The translations under genes were made by a program, and so were the position numbers. DNA of 64,000 bases from Dendrobates tinctorius (Eukaryota). Position 1 is the first letter of the stretch. Every line of letters begins with the position of its first letter. The notes below the pieces were generated by a model. That model saw nothing but the letters and a program-made list of their open reading frames with translations. It was not told the DNA's origin and did no database searches. The DNA lies in the NCBI RefSeq assembly GCF_039654945.1, contig NW_027361679.1:81530001-81594000 (forward strand). The letters are read 5' to 3'. This document shows positions 1 through 17,465 of the stretch, one piece after another.

Positions 1-399
1 ATTGTATCTCAAGTGGTTGGGCTTGTTTGAACTCAGTTTCTTGTAGGTTCTAATAATAACAGTGACAGCAGGAGCGGAGGATGGGAGTATTCATTTGCTG
101 CTCCTGCGCTATTAATACGGTAATTTAAAAAAATGGCGTGGGTTCCCACCTATTTTCGATAGTCAGACAGACAAAACTCACAGCTGGGGGCTGATATAGT
201 CAGGCTGGAAAGCTGGTGGTGGGCTTGATGTCACCGAACAATACAAAAGTGACATCAACCACACAAATTTGAACCCCACTTGCCACTGATACAGGGCAAG
301 TGGGAAGAGCTGGGAAATGCGCCAGCATTGGAGCATCTAATAGATGTGCCTTTTCTGGGCAGCTGCGGGCTATTTTTAAGCTGGGGGGGTCAATATCCA

Positions 400-621
400 T
401 GGCCCCTTGCAAGCCTGCAGGGGTAGGACACGTGACCCTCTTCCCATTGGAAAAAATAAAGTTGGATCCAAAATGGCCGACTTCAAAATGGCCACCATGG
501 TCACCACCCATCTTGAAAAGTTTCCCTCCTCCCATATACTAATGTGCTACAAACAGGAAGTTGATGTCACCAACCATTCCCATTTTATTTAGGTGTATCC
601 ATATAAATGGCCCAACCTGTA
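400..621. mobile_element. Fragment of a Tc1/mariner-type non-autonomous element (one terminus)
   Basis: Ends ...ccatataaatggcccaacctg|TA, a TcMar-like terminus plus TA; the other end is not recognisable. Confidence 0.35.
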
Positions 622-1154
622 GAACTGAATTTAGCAGCAAACAAAGCACAAAAGGTTCGAAAAGTTTTTTTCCCTTGTGTCAGGTAGGATAAAAAATGAA
701 TTTTAGGTATAAATCAGTTGTATCTGGTTTTATACCTAAAAGTATAATATCTTCAGCATGGATATTTGTGGGTTTGTAACTGAGTTTCTTAATAGCGAAA
801 TGTCTAGTGAATGCCAGTTTCCTAAATGCAATCAGGATAAACTCGTTTATAGGTCCTGTGGGCAGAAACCCGAGGTCTTTGTTTAGAATTTGTATCTTGG
901 ACTCCTTAACCCCTTAATCGCTGCCCGCCCGCGCCTATTAACTAGTTAAATCCCGTTGTCAAAGCTGACAGCGGGCATTTAAATAGCACTTCCGGCCGCC
1001 AGGCCGGAGGTGAGCTCATTGCCGACCCCCGTCACGTGATCGGGGGTCGGCGTCATGTTGCCTGTTGTCTATGGTTGTTCCAGGCTGATGGCTTTCAGCG
1101 CCGCCCGGTGGTCGGCGCTGAAAGCACAGGAGTAGATCTGCTACATATGGGCGA

Positions 1155-1668
1155 TCTGAAGGGTGACCACTCTCTACTCATAAGTGCCTTATACTGACAC
1201 TTTTTTCTCCAAGGTAATAAGACCGTTAGATCTCTCCTCTGCTCTGAAAACTCCTGTGTTTTAATAAACTGTACATTAGCGTTTTTTCTTGTTTTTCATT
1301 TTTTTGTTTTTGTTTTGTACAAGACTTAACTGTATGTGACATATTAATTCCTGGTCTATTTTATTGTCCCCCTTTTTTTAACATGTGTTATGTTCCCATT
1401 GCCAGTCTATATTTTCTCTTTTTGTTGGAATCTTTGATGCAATGTCTTTATTTTTATGTATTGTTTTCCTTATTTTATAGTACCCCTTGAGTAAGATCCA
1501 GGAGGATCGAAACGTTGGGTAGCTTACTGGAAAACCTATGTGTATATACTACAATTGAAGTTGTGGCACTATTCTTTGTCTAGACTGGATGTCTTCGTTT
1601 GAATAAAATGTACTTATTTTTTGCAAATCATCAAGTAGTAGTGTGCGGTGGATTATACCTTTTTTTCT
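1155..1668 (+). repeat. PLE 5' pseudo-LTR
   Basis: Near-identical to 16960-17465 (tctgaagggtgaccactctctactc...ggattatacctttttttc). Confidence 0.9.
1481..1521 (+). ncRNA. Minimal type I hammerhead ribozyme variant (PLE-associated)
   Basis: taccc c TTGAGTAA GATCC-agga-GGATC GAAA CG TT gggta: stem I, U3-A8 variant core with one extra nucleotide, stem II, GAAA, palindromic ACGT stem III. Confidence 0.75.
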
Positions 1669-1782
1669 ATATTCAGGGCTTCTTAGTCCAATCCACCAGC
1701 ACCTCCTCCCGTTACAGACCTGAGTGCACACCATCCTTTATCTTTATTCTACGGTTTTTCTGGTGTCTGCACCGGTCTACCA

Positions 1783-2520
1783 GATGTCTATGGACATTTT
1801 TGCCTATGATAATGCTACTTGCTCAAACATTTTATCCCAAGTCTCGAATTCAAGTGATTTTTTGAGAACTACGACACAAGAGCTGAGAACGAGGGACTAC
1901 GAGAAAGAAAGACGCAGGCTATTATCTTATGATCTTCACTGCATTACTTTGGCTGAGTATCATAAACAAGGGAAGATCCCAAGGGGCCTAAGGAGTAACC
2001 TGCGCCCAACACTGTTCAGTGACAATGAGTAATTCTGCGATAAGTATAGAAAAATGTTAAATAAGTGCTCTCTTGATATTATAATTTTGAATATTGAATT
2101 CCTACGGAAAGCCATTATCGACACGAAAGAAAAAATACAAGCTGTGGAGACACAACTCTCATCCACTCTCTCATCAGCAGACTGGTCAAGTTTGAAAGAA
2201 AAAACAGATAAAATTATAACCGAACAGCAAAAATTTCTACAAGAAAGAAAATGTCAAAAATTCCAACGGGACACCGACGACTACACGAACGAGTTTACGA
2301 GTTTACAGATGGAGCGATTCTTCTGGAGTGAATTCATGGCGACGTCAACCAAACCGCAGACCCGGTTCGTTCAGCAGAGAGCGATTCCTCCACAGGCTCA
2401 ACAAGACAGCGTTTTTTATCCAAAAATCGCAGGGGAGGCTTCCAATGCAACGAAAGACGCGAAGATCTAGGAGGAGAAAAAATGACCACCAGATCACAGG
2501 TAAGGCACCATCCAACCTAG
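1783..2520 (+). pseudogene. PLE N-terminal (ORF1-like) helical domain, disrupted
   Basis: MSMDIFAY...LAEYHKQGKIPRGLRSNLRPTLF...NKCSLDIIIL...KFQRDTDDY..RVYRW; stop at 2030-2032 and indel(s) near 2285-2370; a basic tail ending MTTRSQ in one frame. Confidence 0.7.
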
Positions 2521-4791
2521 TGATCAATATCTCCAGTTACATGCTCTCACCTACAAAACTGTCAGTGCTTCAAAAGGGACTTTAATTTTGTCCTACGCCC
2601 AACTGGGATGCATTCCAGCTGGAAAAGGACCGTCAACGATTTTATCGTGCTGTGAGGTTAAAAACTCACTTTGGGAATTTAAAAGGAAATCCCGATATCA
2701 GTGTCCCCAGATGGGTACGTCTCTGTTGCGGAGATTTCCGTGACCAATCAGGGGTTACGTAATCCCAGTTCATTTAATCCTCCACAGACTTTTCATGCTA
2801 CTGAAACTTTCATTTCTTTTGTCGATCGTGAGGTCAAGGAACTTACACATCAACAACGACTAGGTTTTTTTCCTAAACATAACAACCTTACATTGATAGA
2901 GAAACAAGCACTTGATTCATTGCGGAGTAACAAATCCGTTGTCATTAAACCAGCAGATAAGGGCGGGGCCACTGTGATCATGGATCTCTCCATGTATATC
3001 AATGAGATAACAAGACAACTCTCTGACACTCAAACATACGGGATAACCCCACAAGACCCCACTCCAGAGATAAACAAAAAAATCCAAACCTTGATTAATG
3101 ACAACCTGGATAAACATATTATCGACAGTAAAACAGCCAAGTTTTTGTTAAATCCACATCCCATTACTCCAGTTTTTTATATCTTACCAAAGATACATAA
3201 ATCCCTGGTCAACCCACCGGGTAGACCAATTGTGGCATCAACGGACTCCATACTCTCACCACTGTCAGTCTTCCTTGAGAAAATACTATCACCCCTGGTT
3301 AAGACTACTCGCTCATTCCTACTCGATACAGGACATTTCCTCAGAGTAATCAATGACCTTAAAACCATCTCTCCCGATAGCTTATTAGTCACAATGGATG
3401 TGAATAGTCTCTACACATCCATCTCTCACACCATAGGCCTACAAGCCACTAGGTCTCTACTAGAGACTTCGAACATGACAGCTGACTCTATTCAACTGTG
3501 CCTCGACTTACTCACACTAGTACTGTACGAAAATTTATTTTTATTTGAAGACATATACTACGTCCAGCGATGGGGGACTGCCATGGGTTCCAACGTTGCG
3601 CCGGCTTACGCCAGTGCTTTCATGAATTCCTTTGAGGAACAATTTATCTACCCTACTGAAGACATTCGGCTACACATAAAAAGTTACCATCGTTACATTG
3701 ACGATATTTTCTTAATTTGGACTGGATCCACAGATTCTTTGCAGTCATTCTATACCTATCTTAACTCTCAGGACCCACAGTTACAATTCACCATCCATCA
3801 TGACACAGAATCCATTCCATTCTTAGATATTAGAGTAGTTAAAGATCCACAGGGGAACCTTACTACGGATCTATACACTAAGCCAACTGACTGTAACAGC
3901 CTCCTACATTATTCAAGTAGCCACCTTAAACCCACAAAAAATAGCCTTCCAAGATCTCATTTTACACGGATATCCAGAATTGTCACTGATCCTAATTTAC
4001 TACCTGTTCGGTTAGGAGAGATGTCTAATAAATTTAGGGATAGAGCTTATCCAGATAAGTTACTTGAGAAAGAAATGATACAGATCTTTGATCCACCAAC
4101 TTCAGATTTGGCCATTTCTAAACCAGAAAGACTTCCATTCGTACATACATACCATCCCCTAATGCCAAGGGTCCATTCAATCATCCGCAAGCACTGGCTA
4201 CTACTTTCAAGGGCATACCCCAACATTGAGGCTTTTACCACATTCACCCTTATGTGCAATAGGCAAGCTCCAAACATTAAAGACAGATGGGTACGAGCCG
4301 ATGTTGGGAGCAAGGCTACAGGCCCCTTACAACGTCATCTTGCCACTCATTGCAAAGGGACTTTTCCTTGCCTTAGCTGTGCTTCATGCTCCAATATTAT
4401 CAAATCTGACACAGTGACTCACCCACGTACAGGAAAGTAATTTTCCATCCAGGGATACCATACCTGTGACTCAAATTTTGTTGTTTACGTCATTAAATGT
4501 CCTTGTGGCCTCTTATACGTGGGTGAGACGACACAACATGTCAGGGATAGAATTGCGAGCCATAAATCCACCATACGATGTGGCAAGACATGGCTACCAA
4601 TACCAGATCATTTTGCCAAGCAAAAGCATACGGTAGCACAGCTTAAGTACCAGGTCATCGAACAGGTACCAAAACCAAGGAGAGGCGGTAACCATGTTAA
4701 ATTATTAAAAACAAGGGAAACTTTTTGGATTCATAAATTAGATACCCTATCACCAAAAGGCTTGAATAGAGAAATCAATTGGTTACTATAA
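2412..4791 (+). pseudogene. PLE reverse transcriptase + Cys-rich linker + GIY-YIG endonuclease
   Basis: VINIS..LS..LQKGL, IKPADKGG, FYILPKIHK, PGRPIV, DVNSLYT, GTAMGS, RYIDDIF, CLSCASC/HTC linker, VVY..CPC..YVGET, final GLN. In-frame TAA stops at 2583 and 4438 and a frameshift near 2690. Confidence 0.93.
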
Positions 4792-5254
4792 CTTTAATTA
4801 TGTCTATTATTATTTTTTCAGACACGATAATCAATCACCCCTCAGGGTAAGTGTTTCATTACCGATTTTTTATTGATTTTTTATTTTTACCATTTTTTCT
4901 TATTTTCATATTTTTTCTTATTTTATTCTTTTATTTTTTTATTTTTCATTTTGAGATTTTTTCCATTTTTATTATTTTCCTTCTTTATTATAATTTTCCC
5001 CTTTTTTATTCACTCCCCCAGTTTTATTTTTATTTTTATGTTTATCATTCTTATTTTTATTTATTTTTCTCCCTATTTTTATGATTTTTTCTTCATTTTT
5101 TACTTGCCCTTATACAAACCATATTTATGTTTCCCTATATAACCCATTCCAAGCCTTGGCAGTCCGCCTATTTGGCGATCTATGTGGACTATATTTCCAC
5201 CTAGCATGCCACTGTAGCCCTCTAATACTGCCTCCTTCTCTATGTAGATGGTAC

Positions 5255-5445
5255 TCAACCAAGATGGCGGCCGTTACCGCCATCGCGCATGCGCAATTCT
5301 TAATCATGTCCCCAACCAAAATGGTGGCTATAGCCGCTACTGCGCCTGCGCCATCTCATCTGGACGCCGCGTCACTTCCGGTCCGGCGGTGCCGCGTCAC
5401 TTCCGGTCCGGCGGTGCGCGGCGCCCTATTTAAATTCCCTTCAGT
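5255..5445 (+). promoter_or_regulatory. CpG-rich internal promoter of the PLE
   Basis: YY1-like CAAGATGGCGGC (5260), NRF1-like GCGCATGCGC (5285), two ETS/GABP ACTTCCGGT sites (5374, 5399), TATTTAAAT (5427). Confidence 0.65.
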
Positions 5446-6377
5446 GCCCACACTAGCACATCCAGGACACACAGGACAAGGCGCGGGAGCGCCGCCCCGA
5501 CCTCTGGCTCCTATCTTGACCCCGACACCTTCCTAGGTATTTGTCCTTACTTCCTGACCTTGAATCAGACCACCACCCATTTTGGGCTATTTAAGAATCT
5601 GCCACTTGCTCTCCATAGGTCTGCCATTGGAGACACTTTGAACAGTAACCATTCTGCTTCTGCTGCATCCACAAGGTATATAAAGAAAACTCCCTCCTCC
5701 TTCCTTTTTTCTTACTAAATGCCAGCAATAGCACCCTCTAATATTATGCTAATTCTACTATAGGTTCGCCGCTGATAGCGGCCCACAAAATTATTACCTT
5801 ATCCCGACGGGCTATTTAAGGTACAGGCATTTGGGTTATTTTATTCTCTATATACCTGTGAAATATTAAAATTTTTTATCATACTATTATTTATTTACCC
5901 CTCCTTTCTATGCTACTTTGCCTCTCAGGTTCAAAAACCTATATGAGGGATACCACAGCCCCTATTCAAGTTTGATTCTAATTCTAAGGTATATAACAAG
6001 GTCCGTGTCACAACTATTTTACTACTTTTAGGGCGGTTTCACACGTCCAGATATTTCCGGGACCGGTAAACACGGTCCTGGAGCAATCCGTGTCCGTGTG
6101 GACATGTATACCATCCGTGTATCATCCGCTTGCGATCCGTGTGTACGTGTTTCCCATCCGTGTGCTGTCCGTCTGTCATCCGTGTGCTGTCCGTGTGAAT
6201 ACATATCCAAACCTAAGGTTTCTATGTCCAAATGAAGGGTTAAAGTGTCAATTTAATGCTTTAAAATGGGAAAGGTGTGAGCCATTAGTGATGAGTGTTT
6301 CAAAAATTGACAGATGGGTTAATACAATGACATATTAGCTTAGGGTTGTGTGTTATTATTCCTTAGGCCTCACAAAT

Positions 6378-8835
6378 ATGTCTATTTCAAATGAGGCGTT
6401 GTTGTGGTTGGCGTGGCTTGTGTCACGTCGCTTTGGGGTTCGCCAACTTAGGCTTGGTCAGGAACCACGGGGAAAAAAAAGACTATGGATTCACCCTATA
6501 CTATTACTCCGTGGGGCACATGGTCATTTTACCAAGTTGTATGTTGAACTTTGCCAATACCCATTGAAGTTTGTGGCTTTTTGTCGCCTATCCATTTCTG
6601 GATTTGACACAATTCTGGCGTTTTTGCGTCCTTACCTTCTCAGACAAGACACCTGCATGTGACTAAGCATTTCTCCAGAGGAGCGTTTGCTAGTAACCTT
6701 GAGGTAACTTTTGTAACTCACACATTTAACTCAGGCTTTCACATTATATTGTGTAATGTTTGATTTCCCTAGGTTACGCACTAAACATTATTTAAACAGC
6801 CATACATGTCTTGCTTAACATTCTCCTACAACTACAGGCCAAAAAGCAATTTGTCTATGATGTATTACTATTAACCTAATCCGATTACCCTCAACCAAAC
6901 TAGTAACATGCCAAATTTCAAACCTGGCTATTGTAACTTACACCTATGTGCTTCCTTCATGGTTGTTCTTTAGATTTTAATCAACATATGTTATAATTAT
7001 ATGTGCTGTCTGAGCTTCACTATGTTACTATTGTTTTCCTTTCCATCATATTCTGTACCGTTTTAGTATTGCTAGACACCTAAACTTTTGTTTTGTGATC
7101 AGATTCCTGGCTACTGGCAATTATTTTTCTTCCCTCCATTTTGAGTTCCTCCCTGAAACGTCAACCATATCCAGGATTGTGCGCTCAACCTGTGACCTCA
7201 TATGGGACAAGCTGAAGAGCTGATTCATGCCACAGCCAACCACACAAGACTGGGTGACGATTGCCCAGGGGTTCATGGAAGCCACAGAGTTCGCTAATTG
7301 CATAGGTGCCCTTGATGGTAAACACATTCGTGTGAAGAAGCCCCCAAAATCAGGGTCTCGTTACTTTAATTACAAAAAATATTTTTCCGTTGTGCTGCTG
7401 GCGGTAGCAGACAGCAACTACTGCTTTGTAATTGCTGACATTGGGGAATATGGGAGTGCCTCTGATTGTTATGAGCGGTGGAACGCACTAAATAAAATTA
7501 AAATAAAGTGTGTTCACCGCTCGGGGTCCACCGTGCGGTAGATGACAAAACCGCTGCTGAGAGAGGCAGATTACTTAAGGTGGTAATGTGCACAGGTTTT
7601 AGCTGCACCTAGCGCACAAAAAGCAAACTCTGTTACACTCACAGAGCTGCAAGCATGACCATATGCAGAAGCAGACTGTTTCACCCACAGAGCTGCAAGC
7701 ATAAATGCAAAAACAAAACCCTGAGTCTGTTTTAACCTCACAGAACTCAGAGACACAGACGCGGTACAGGCTCCGTCTAGACCTACCGTTTAGACGTCTG
7801 GTACAGTGACGCTGCAACAGCAAACGCACACTGTGCTGCAAGTGCTGCGCGGCAAGAATAGAGCCGGTGGCAAGGCGCTGCAAAAATCACTGGCGCAATG
7901 CAGGACGCTTAGCTGCTGAAGTGGCTGAAGCTTGAGCGCGCTGGCGCTAGCACTGCTCCTGGCTGACCCAAACACTCACACATGCGTAATAACAAAGGAA
8001 GGGGATATTTAATGAGTCAGTCACCAGTCCAAACATCCGTCACCATACACACAGCAGCAGTATGAAATACTAGCGCATGGCGGAACGGCCATGCGCACTT
8101 TTTATAGCGTACGGGACCTGAAATCTCCAGAGCCCTGAGCATAACCAATGGAATCAGGAGCAGGACCTGAGCACCTGACTCCTGAAGTCCAATGGGAGCT
8201 CATCCCATGAGCATGCGCAGAAGAAGGGACGAAGGACTTAGCCTCTGGAGACAAATGTGAGGATCTGTGTTCCTGCATAGGTATTGTAGAAACCAGATTC
8301 CTAACACTGATGCTCGGATCTTTCGATATTCCAGATTAGCTAGGCGACTTGCTGAGAAAAATTTTAATATTCCCCAACCATGTGTGCTTCCTGGAGCCTC
8401 ATCCCCACCTGCACCATTTATTATGGTTGCTGATGAGGGTTTTGCACTGTCCAGGCATGTTCTTCGCCCATTTCCACGTCGATGTTTGGACGCCCGTAGG
8501 TGCATTTTTAACATGCGACTCATGAGAGCACGTCGATTGGTTGAGTGTGCTTTCGGGATCTTTACTAGTAAATGGCGTATCTTTGAAACACAAATCCAGA
8601 TGCATCCAGACAATGTCCAGGCAGTCATAAAGGTAGCAGTGATTTTGCATAATTTTTCAAGAAAACAAGAACCATCCTTGGATGATTTGGATGAGGAGAG
8701 AGTGGTACATTACCAGAGGACGGTCGGCGTGCTACCCAAGTAGCTCAGTCTGGCCTTCAAGTCAGGAATCTTTTTGCTGATTATTTTCTAACACCAGAGG
8801 GTAGTGTGCCATGGCAAACTGAGATGAACAACTAA
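6378..8835 (+). pseudogene. Harbinger DDE transposase; exons 6378-6703 and 7103-8835 (exon 2 split by a solo LTR)
   Basis: WIHP motif; phase-2 intron in TLR|FLATG (GT 6704, AG 7102); GALDGKH, YFNYKKYFS, VADEGF, ARRLVECAFG, LHNF; TGA stops near 6660 and 7221. Confidence 0.9.
7467..8306. mobile_element. Solo LTR inserted in the Harbinger transposase
   Basis: TGTTA...TAACA termini; 5-bp TSD CTGAT (7462-7466, 8307-8311); removing it restores GSASDARIF. Confidence 0.88.
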
Positions 8836-9866
8836 TGTTAGCTTTACATTTGTCTTAATTTTCTAAGTGTCTTTATGAATTTTTTTTGCCATTTGGCTAA
8901 TAATTTTGTTATGGACTCACAAGACAATGAGGACCCTTGATGTTGGTTGCGGCCTTAAATTTTATGTTAGTAACAGATACCTGGCCTTCTCAAAGTCTTA
9001 TGGTTAACTATACCAAATAACTAATACCTCATTTTGGTTAATTTATGTCTTTTGTTAGGCTAATGCTTACTTGTAGGAAAGTATGTTTTGGCAGCAAGAA
9101 ATAATGTGTCTGCAAAAATAAAGACCACCCTGAAGCATTGTGTGTGGTTTGGAATGTTATTGTGACACATGACAATCAGCTTGAACATACATACTGACAT
9201 TGCTCATTTCTATAGAAATTGCCTGTTCCCAAGCTCAATAGTTTTGCAAACTTGAGTCTGTGACATATATATATATCTGCACATTAAAAATATTTGAACT
9301 GTGTGCAAAGCATGTCTTCTATTCTGTCATCTCCTGATGTTCTAGCACCCAACCCGCCAGAAAAATGGTTGCCTTGTGAGTGTAGAAAATATATACATCT
9401 ATGTATGTATAGTGTCAACATATGTTTTATATCAGAAATATATGTATATATACAATACATGCATATATCTCATTGATATTGCAAGCTGTCATTGTGCTTA
9501 CTATCTGCAACACATGATTTGCCACCTTTGACAATGCAATTGGTGTGTCCAATACCAACACCACTCACCTAATGTGTTGGATTGCTGAACTTGTTTAAGC
9601 CAGGGACTTTTATTGTGTCTTGTCATCTTCTTAAAAATTACCCTAGCAGCATGCTGAAACATGTTTTCATTAGTATCCTAAGCCAATGCGAGCTAGCTAA
9701 ATAATAAATTCACACACTATCATTGCTCAATATAGGTGTAAATGCCAATACATTAGGATTTGTGTAGCATTTTACAAGTTGACACTAGTGTGAATGAGCT
9801 GTAACAGTCTGACAAAGTGTGAACAAACTGGGTGCCCATGATTGTACCTTCTTTAATTATAGTATA

Positions 9867-16959: not shown

Positions 16960-17465
16960 TCTGAAGGGTGACCACTCTCTACTCATAAGTGCCTTATACT
17001 GACACTTTTTTATCCCAGGTAATAAGACCTTTAGATCTCTCCTCTGCTCTGAAAACTCCTGTGTTTTAATAAACTGTACATTAGCGTTTTTTGTTGTTTT
17101 CCGGTTTTTGTTTTTGTTTTGTACAAGACTTAACTGTATGTGACATATTAAATCCTGGTCTATTTTATTGTCCCCCCTTTTTTTTACATGTGTTATGTTC
17201 CCATTGCCAGTCTATATTTTCTCTTTTTGTTAGAATCTTTGATGCAATGTCTTTATTTTTATGTATTGTTTTCCTTATTTTATAGAACCCCTTGAGTAAG
17301 ATCCGGGAGGATCGAAACGTTGGGTAGCTTACCCTATGTGTATATACTACAATTGAAGTTGTGGCACTATTCTTTGTCTAGACTGGATGTCTTCATTTGA
17401 CTAAAATTTACTTATTTTTTGCAAATCATCAAGTAGTAGTGTGCGGAGGATTATACCTTTTTTTC
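16960..17465 (+). repeat. PLE 3' pseudo-LTR
   Basis: Direct repeat of 1155-1668. Confidence 0.9.
17286..17326 (+). ncRNA. Hammerhead ribozyme variant (second pLTR copy)
   Basis: accc c TTGAGTAA GATCC-ggga-GGATC GAAACGTT gggt; core and stem II arms are identical to the 5' copy. Confidence 0.75.

Follow-up and report, generated by a model that had tools for sequence, protein, structure and literature searches.

A conserved intron enclosing the reverse transcriptase frame of a frog Penelope-like retrotransposon probably yields an ORF1-only message

INTRODUCTION

Does a Penelope-like element (PLE) of frogs use splicing to separate its first protein from its reverse transcriptase (RT)? The question is raised by a 64 000-nt stretch of the Dendrobates tinctorius genome (assembly GCF_039654945.1, contig NW_027361679.1, positions 81 530 001 to 81 594 000, forward strand; hereafter the window, with coordinates counted from its first base), which carries a decayed PLE copy with the remnants of two open reading frames (ORFs), ORF1 and ORF2, the latter for an RT plus a GIY-YIG endonuclease (EN). 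An earlier note, made from the letters of the window, had proposed that a 2322-nt intron encloses nearly the whole RT-EN region. PLEs are generally portrayed as elements of a single ORF whose small introns have no known purpose. We compared the window copy with its relatives in other frogs and conclude, with a probability of roughly 0.78, that a conserved intron excises ORF2 and leaves an ORF1-only message, and that the element would thus maintain two RNA pools.

RESULTS

Splice signals in the window

All of the splice-site letters cited in the earlier note are present. The codons ATG (2482–2484) ACC ACC AGA TCA CAG, encoding MTTRSQ, end at position 2499 and are followed directly by GTAAGG (2500–2505), and the acceptor was read directly at the place given for it. 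The features of the copy are as follows.

1784–2508, + strand: ORF1 remnant, with a helical domain, an Arg/Gly-rich tail and the C-terminal end ...MTTRSQ (from tblastn, three-frame translation and homologues)
2309–4791, + strand: ORF2 remnant (RT, Cys-rich linker, GIY-YIG endonuclease), overlapping ORF1 in the –1 frame (from Pfam and tblastn)
2412–2418, + strand: U UUU UUA heptamer, in frame with ORF1, candidate –1 frameshift site, 81 nt before the donor
2497–2505, + strand: 5' splice site CAG/GTAAGG with the junction at 2499/2500, in phase 0 of ORF1 and inside the ORF2 codons ACA-GGT-AAG
2500–4821, + strand: predicted spliceosomal intron of 2322 nt, enclosing nearly all of ORF2 (RT-EN)
4802–4821, + strand: pyrimidine tract and CAG acceptor, ttattttttcAG, ending 30 nt past the ORF2 stop
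4822–4846, + strand: 25-nt mini-exon, the first nine bases of which, ACA CGA TAA, read Thr-Arg-stop after ...TRSQ
4847–4852, + strand: second donor, GTAAGT, predicted to open the next intron of the 3' tail (leader of the pseudo-long terminal repeat, pseudo-LTR)

Joining the donor to the acceptor therefore gives the ...TRSQ-T-R-stop product that had been predicted. We scored donors with an approximate vertebrate matrix, so that the bit values are rough: the site at 2499 scored 11.6 bits, the highest of the 122 GT sites in 1700–4900, and the donor at 4846 was second (10.2 bits). Across the whole window, only 6 of the 3596 GT sites on the + strand scored at least as high as the site at 2499. The acceptor at 4821 was not unique by a crude pyrimidine count, in which it tied with several others. 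Positions 4907–4962, 85 nt downstream of the region under study, are part of a T-rich low-complexity tail.

Overlapping ORFs in intact relatives

In intact relatives, ORF1 has ∼245 amino acids and ORF2 (RT-EN) ∼828, and ORF2 overlaps the last ∼210 nt of ORF1. For example, at the intact Ranitomeya variabilis locus L002, ORF1 occupies 3480–4217 (245 amino acids) and ORF2 occupies 4001–6487 in the –1 frame (828 amino acids, protein P0001); the C-terminal end of this ORF1 is ...ERMATRSQ-VSHRTWY-stop, with a GTG codon for Val immediately after ATRSQ. Because the L002 ORF1 ends in frame with an ATRSQ-type tail, the MTTRSQ codons of the window correspond to the C-terminal end of ORF1 and not to the start of an ORF, and the phase 0 given for the donor is that of the ORF1 frame of intact relatives. 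In these relatives the donor likewise lies in phase 0, 5–8 codons ahead of the ORF1 stop, and the acceptor lies just past the ORF2 stop. Both L001 and L002, which share ∼65% DNA identity with the window, retain CAG/GTGAG at the equivalent site and carry, after the ORF2 stop, a pyrimidine-tract acceptor, ACN CGN TRA and then a nearby downstream GTGAGT donor.

The AlphaFold model of ORF1, built on a 56-sequence alignment, had a mean predicted local distance difference test score (pLDDT) of 80, with a confident helical domain at residues 10–168 and a disordered Arg/Gly-rich tail at residues 179–240. Foldseek returned no match to this model in the PDB at E up to 0.001, the best hit of an ORF1 profile search of PDB sequences reached only E 0.33, and ORF1 has no Pfam family, Pfam giving only RVT_1 and GIY-YIG on the element. 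From its composition, we would guess that ORF1 has a nucleic-acid-binding or chaperone role.

The intron in annotated genes of other frogs

A search with the L002 ORF1 as the query returned 118 proteins, many of them RefSeq 'uncharacterized LOC' entries of 238–252 amino acids. Among 72 ORF1 homologues with a TRSQ-like motif, 33 stop exactly two residues later, 18 continue with Val (GTN) and 20 have other short tails; the two terminal residues vary among the 33 (TR, TH, MH, AR, NR and others). We took the loci of five two-residue models and rebuilt their exons, and each model proved to be a coding sequence of two exons.

Ranitomeya variabilis (L003): intron of 2321 nt; donor CAG/GTAAGC; terminal exon ACC CGC TGA
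Rhinoderma darwinii (L004-6, three loci): intron of 2388 nt; donor CAG/GTAGGA; terminal exon ACA CGC TAG
Bufo gargarizans (L008): intron of 2334 nt; donor CAG/GTAAGG; terminal exon ACC CGC TGA
Bufo bufo (L009): intron of 2345 nt; donor CAG/GTAAGG; terminal exon ATG CAC TAA
Hyla sarda (L010): intron of 2340 nt; donor CAG/GTATGC; terminal exon GCC CGC TAA

The 2322-nt intron predicted in the window is thus the same intron that NCBI gene models place in five other frog species (2321–2388 nt). Their acceptors are pyrimidine-rich and end in AG, and the intron encloses an intact ORF2 of 829 amino acids (P0017) in L004 and an ORF2 of 816 amino acids in L010. One protein is common to several XP accessions, which fits several transcript isoforms. 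These RefSeq introns are likely to have transcript support, because a final exon as short as two codons is not something that homology or ab initio prediction would make up. The Xenopus laevis locus (L011) has the heptamer and both ORFs; there, ORF1 is annotated as unspliced and the aligned GT stands in a weak context (GTACGC).

Conservation of the splice sites beyond coding constraint

We compared eight copies from five species, the ORF2 proteins of which are only 50–67% identical. The donor was kept in all eight, and the unspliced ORF1 tail beyond it varies in both sequence and length. In the ORF2 frame the site reads NCA-GGT-RAG, so that a conserved Gly codon has the T of the donor GT at its third position; in the ORF1 frame, this T takes the second position of the codon with which the unspliced tail opens. 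That third base of the Gly codon was T in 8/8 copies, where GGT makes up 31% of the Gly codons of these ORFs. As a control, we examined 48 columns in which seven copies share a four-fold-degenerate residue, and the third base was identical in all seven copies in none of them (0/48). Silent sites are saturated, given that the ORF2 proteins are only 50–67% identical; the synonymous T at the donor would otherwise have drifted, and its conservation exceeds coding constraint.

The acceptor side gave a similar picture. The pyrimidine tract and AG stand at the same place in L001–L004 and L008–L010, two codons and a stop follow in 8/8 copies, and the next donor (of the GTGAGT or GTAAA type) lies 16–53 nt past the acceptor in L001–L004 and L008; all of these are kept although they lie in non-coding DNA. 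The stop is fixed two codons past the junction while the two residues vary, which suggests that the spliced message is translated.

Candidate –1 frameshift site

All 11 loci compared, that of Xenopus laevis among them, have a U UUU UUA heptamer in frame with ORF1, 69–96 nt ahead of the donor. It lies within the overlap and fits the X XXY YYZ pattern in the upstream frame, with the variant U UUU UUU in L002. Besides 2412–2418 in the window, its positions are 4633 in L001, 4109 in L002, 3630 in L003, 3630 in L004, 3624 in L008, 3624 in L009, 3633 in L010, 3654 in L011, 648 in L007 and 955 in L015. Heptamer and donor form two conserved islands, separated by a stretch that varies strongly. The heptamer implies that ORF1 and ORF2 are probably joined by –1 frameshifting on unspliced RNA. 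RNAalifold on nine loci gave no consensus pairs from the heptamer to the donor; pseudoknots are beyond this method and the interval aligns poorly.

One annotated protein offers another connection between the two ORFs. In the 975-amino-acid model P0003 (Ranitomeya variabilis L001, 4691–4771), ORF1 and RT are fused through an 80-nt 'intron' that is non-canonical, GC-AG at best, and spans the region from the slippery site to the N-terminal motif. We rejected it as a splice; the annotation probably introduced the interval to get around the –1 frame change.

Molecules without the RT region

Logan contigs of 0.9–1.4 kb from eight runs of one SRA series (SRR5149374, -400, -413, -459, -479, -508, -533 and -543) consist of ORF1 and tail and contain no RT. 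In these contigs, a complete or 5'-truncated ORF1 ending in ...VTRSQ-A-T-stop runs directly onto a tail of ∼320 nt, with the junction CACAG/GCCACCTAG. These molecules, whether RNA or DNA, lack the intron interval. Two of the contigs begin at most 2 nt apart, ∼25–30 nt past a TATA-like box, which resembles a transcription start. A gapped match of the RT-less contig L007 to the genomic loci was not obtained, the sequences being too diverged, and Rfam gave no hammerhead ribozyme in the RT-less contigs.

Some of the RT-less molecules have features of insertions. Contig L015 (1–1087) closes on itself in the k=31 graph, the 30 nt at its start being repeated at its end, so that the unit has 1057 nt; such a closed unit is what one expects if the tail has the sequence of the upstream pseudo-LTR, and L015 is 89% identical to the other RT-less contigs. 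In three contigs from as many runs (L016–L018), ∼550 nt of unrelated sequence are fused to an RT-less copy that is truncated at its 5' end. The spliced RNA may have given rise to these units as non-autonomous derivatives in the genome. The closed unit at 89% identity to a second RT-less form, together with the 5'-truncated fused copy, hints at a further step, which we put forward as a speculation that is rather doubtful at present: that the spliced RT-less RNA was itself copied into the genome and founded non-autonomous lineages of ORF1 plus tail, with RT supplied in trans.

Identity and decay of the window copy

Judged by its sequence, the window element belongs to the Penelope-like retrotransposons of frogs, is of Neptune type and is dead. 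The RVT_1 match of Pfam covers 2701–4437 with E 2.5e-6 and 27.8 bits, slightly below the 29.6-bit cut-off, and the GIY-YIG endonuclease (PF01541) follows in the C-terminal position at 4441–4788 with 23.0 bits (cut-off 22.6). More than 1500 frog proteins matched in a protein search, the best, from dendrobatid frogs, being 65% identical over 98% of the window region, and frog PLE proteins of 828–838 amino acids matched the window ORF2 with E as low as 1e-244. The frog proteins with this 65% identity carry PF00078, DUF8422 and HTH_animal, and the PLE-type RT domain is thus represented in the window. Directly before the GIY-YIG domain the translation contains a Cys-rich linker, GTFPCLSCASCSNI, and the same motif occurs in P0001, P0009, P0011 and P0017. 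A CX2-5CxxC zinc-finger-like RT-EN linker marks Neptune and Nematis and not Penelope or Poseidon (PMC8557442); the Cys-rich pattern of the linker points to a Neptune/Nematis-like clade, and it is this motif and no other character that we used for the assignment to the Neptune type.

We mapped the limits of the remnants by tblastn with the intact ORF1 and ORF2 of L002 and by three-frame translation. The damage amounts to three in-frame stops and three frame changes, on account of which the copy is called dead. The ORF1 remnant lies in three frames (1784–2287, 2289–2396 and 2371–2508), with a stop at 2030–2032 and frame shifts near 2288–2298 and near 2371–2400. The ORF2 remnant also lies in three frames (about 2309–2380, 2379–2672 and 2731–4782), with stops at 2583–2585 and 4438–4440, frame changes near 2380–2400 and 2672–2731 and its true stop, TAA, at 4789–4791. 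At the frame change of the ORF1 remnant there is an exact 8-nt tandem duplication (2290–2297 = 2298–2305).

The element is present once within the window, in which no second copy of its tail was found. Just upstream of it, a 167-nt stretch (1501–1667) recurs 15.6 kb away at 17306–17465 with 93% identity, and 1599–1734 matches both flanks of the L001 element. On the strength of this match to both flanks, 1501–1667 is probably pseudo-LTR sequence and 17306–17465 probably a solo fragment of another copy. Tandem arrangements were seen at related loci: L002 includes a partial upstream copy (590–1366 and 4001–8315, head-to-tail, period 5118 nt), and L009 has three tandem units or genes 4482 nt apart. 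Tandem, partly truncated head-to-tail copies are the usual pseudo-LTR architecture of PLEs. The gene range at L002 reaches 1.8 kb past the ORF2 stop, suggesting further isoforms or spliced tail exons. On the downstream side of the window copy, 5250–5460 is CpG-rich and contains a duplicated block of ∼22 nt (gtcacttccggtccggcggtg), motifs like AAGATGGCGGC and a TATTTAAAT box; beyond it come short segments, all with AG|GTA at their ends, a layout that fits an internal promoter and an exon ladder.

Rfam found no hammerhead ribozyme in positions 1–9000 of the window with the limit relaxed to E 1; its models give poor coverage of the minimal hammerheads of PLEs. The weak Rfam rows for HepC_CRE and Atu_C9, with scores far under the gathering thresholds, were set aside as chance; a Pfam EAD9 row (21 bits against a 25-bit cut-off) was taken for coiled-coil noise.

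DISCUSSION

A model with two RNA pools

The annotated models, the conservation of the sites and the existence of RT-less ORF1 molecules (RNA or DNA) all support the proposal of the earlier note that removal of the RT region yields an ORF1-only product. We suppose that the intron runs from a CAG/GTRAG donor a few codons before the ORF1 stop to an acceptor just past the ORF2 stop. Splicing would delete ORF2, and the mini-exon would supply the two codons and the stop that complete ORF1. The unspliced RNA would serve as the template for transposition, as a message for ORF1 and, through a frameshift at U UUU UUA, as a message for an ORF1-ORF2 fusion, while the spliced RNA of ∼1 kb would be an ORF1-only message that raises the ratio of ORF1 to ORF2. 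We infer, further, translation of the spliced RNA and a regulated balance between the two pools, so that splicing would act as a switch, as had been suggested, rather than divide the RNA constitutively. Active copies in the Dendrobates tinctorius genome would splice as their relatives do.

Several points weigh against this model. The support for the junction comes from gene models of other species and from contigs, not from RNA of Dendrobates tinctorius (the three small sequencing runs listed for its genome contain nothing of the stretch), and the window copy is decayed and cannot make an intact ORF1, so that it says nothing on function at this locus. The transcript support of the RefSeq models is deduced from the shape of the exons. 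The RT-less contigs may be RNA or DNA, and the junction in them is a putative one. Unspliced RNA already allows ORF1 to be translated, and the benefit of splicing is argued by analogy. Finally, because the Xenopus laevis ORF1 is annotated as unspliced and its GT context is weak, the intron may be confined to, or stronger in, hyloid frog lineages.

Alternative explanations

One could suppose that nothing is spliced and that, in a transposon that is dead, the motifs arose by chance or as a side effect of coding constraint. The GT does lie in coding sequence, within ITGKAPSNLV (ITGKAPSNLVINIS) of the ORF2 frame, and in this frame a conserved Gly comes before Lys, Glu or Arg, an order that favours G-G-N-R-A-G; the window copy is moreover degenerate, and its acceptor does not stand out by the crude pyrimidine measure. 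This was in fact our first reading, based on the GT inside the ORF2 frame and on the ATG of MTTRSQ being out of frame, and it was dropped when MTTRSQ turned out to be the end of ORF1 in intact relatives. Coding constraint leaves the third base of the Gly codon free, and yet that base is T in every copy, against none of the 48 control columns; conservation in non-coding DNA extends to the acceptor, the two codons with their stop and the next donor; and the intron is used in five independent genome annotations, alongside RT-less molecules with the junction. We therefore give this explanation hardly any credence. The idea that the annotated introns are mapping artefacts, with RNA of RT-deleted copies aligned across full-length ones, draws on the possibility that RT-less copies exist as DNA and on the indirect nature of the support behind the RefSeq models. 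However, the deletion ends at a CAG/GT donor and at a pyrimidine-tract AG in five species and several diverged subfamilies, which implies an origin by splicing, and artefacts would leave the selection on GT in intact copies unexplained. Such an error seems to us very improbable.

A less extreme alternative accepts the intron and assigns it another role, namely attenuation of the RT message, RNA export or stability, or the origin of RT-less copies. It gains from the fact that the spliced RNA adds no new protein, since the unspliced RNA encodes ORF1, and from the resemblance of the RT-less units (closed at 1057 nt, or 5'-truncated and fused to unrelated sequence) to genomic insertions. The sites are, however, retained in autonomous, intact copies, and a stop exactly two codons past the junction in diverged subfamilies, with varying residues, points to selection on translation. 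We consider a different role unlikely, and the excision of ORF2 to leave an ORF1 message remains the explanation that we prefer.

Comparison with known systems

Drosophila copia makes a spliced, gag-only subgenomic RNA. Spliced gag-only RNA is also known in barley BARE (PMC3735527) and in Arabidopsis Ty1/Copia elements (PMC5580714). The likeness to the frog PLE is close in layout: the intron removes the polymerase region, the short message encodes a structural or RNA-binding protein only, so that the first protein is in excess, and the unspliced RNA carries the polymerase and serves as the template for copying. The Ty1/copia elements differ in that they have LTRs, one ORF for gag-pol and virus-like particles, and have no sequence relationship to the frog PLE, which has a GIY-YIG endonuclease, overlapping ORFs, an upstream candidate frameshift site and a two-codon terminal exon. 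Pfam gave only RVT_1 and GIY-YIG on the element, and thus no LTR-type gag-pol polyprotein with protease and integrase. The resemblance to the spliced-gag strategy of copia would accordingly be one of function only. Between the two analogies drawn in the earlier note, that with copia fits the better, and that with P-element regulation fits less well.

In retroviruses, the env and accessory mRNAs come from subgenomic splicing that joins a donor close to the end of the first gene to an acceptor beyond pol, and gag-pol is made by –1 frameshifting. The balance of spliced and unspliced RNA would be a shared trait; retroviral splicing exposes a downstream gene, whereas in the frog element it would only end ORF1.

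Within the PLEs, Arkhipova et al. are said to have described, in 2003, a 75-nt intron in the 5' untranslated region (UTR) and pseudo-LTR of Drosophila virilis Penelope. Chlamys-3_cRei has introns in its 5' UTR, and both Chlamys isoforms keep complete EN and RT (PMC8557442). The known introns resemble that of the frog element in being spliceosomal, in belonging to the same class of element, in being retained in genomic copies and in optional splicing that gives isoforms. They differ in being short and in lying in the leader or interrupting an ORF without deletion of the RT, whereas here ∼2.3 kb would enclose RT-EN. According to a figure legend, some PLEs, the clades of which are not named there, have conserved introns and a coiled-coil-type ORF1 that is separated from the RT ORF by a frameshift (PMC8557442, Figure 1); these share an upstream ORF1 with the frog element, and neither that article nor the others consulted mention a splice that bypasses ORF2. 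An intron enclosing the RT was not described in the PLE literature searched, and a prior description is possible, as most subscription journals lay outside the search. The strategy is thus known for copia-type elements, and we found no report of it for the Penelope-like class.

Implications

If the model is correct, a large lineage of frog PLEs has a gag-pol-like layout consisting of overlapping ORFs, a conserved slippery heptamer and an intron whose splicing takes out the polymerase gene, and PLEs would independently have solved the problem of the ratio of structural protein to enzyme in the way that copia-type elements and retroviruses did. The retention of introns in PLEs would gain a function, and a route to RT-less derivatives would be offered. 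The many 'uncharacterized LOC' genes of ∼240 amino acids in frog annotations would also be explained. If, in addition, the tentative back-copied lineages are real, they would link autonomous Penelope-like elements to short, tail-only, retrozyme-like repeats.

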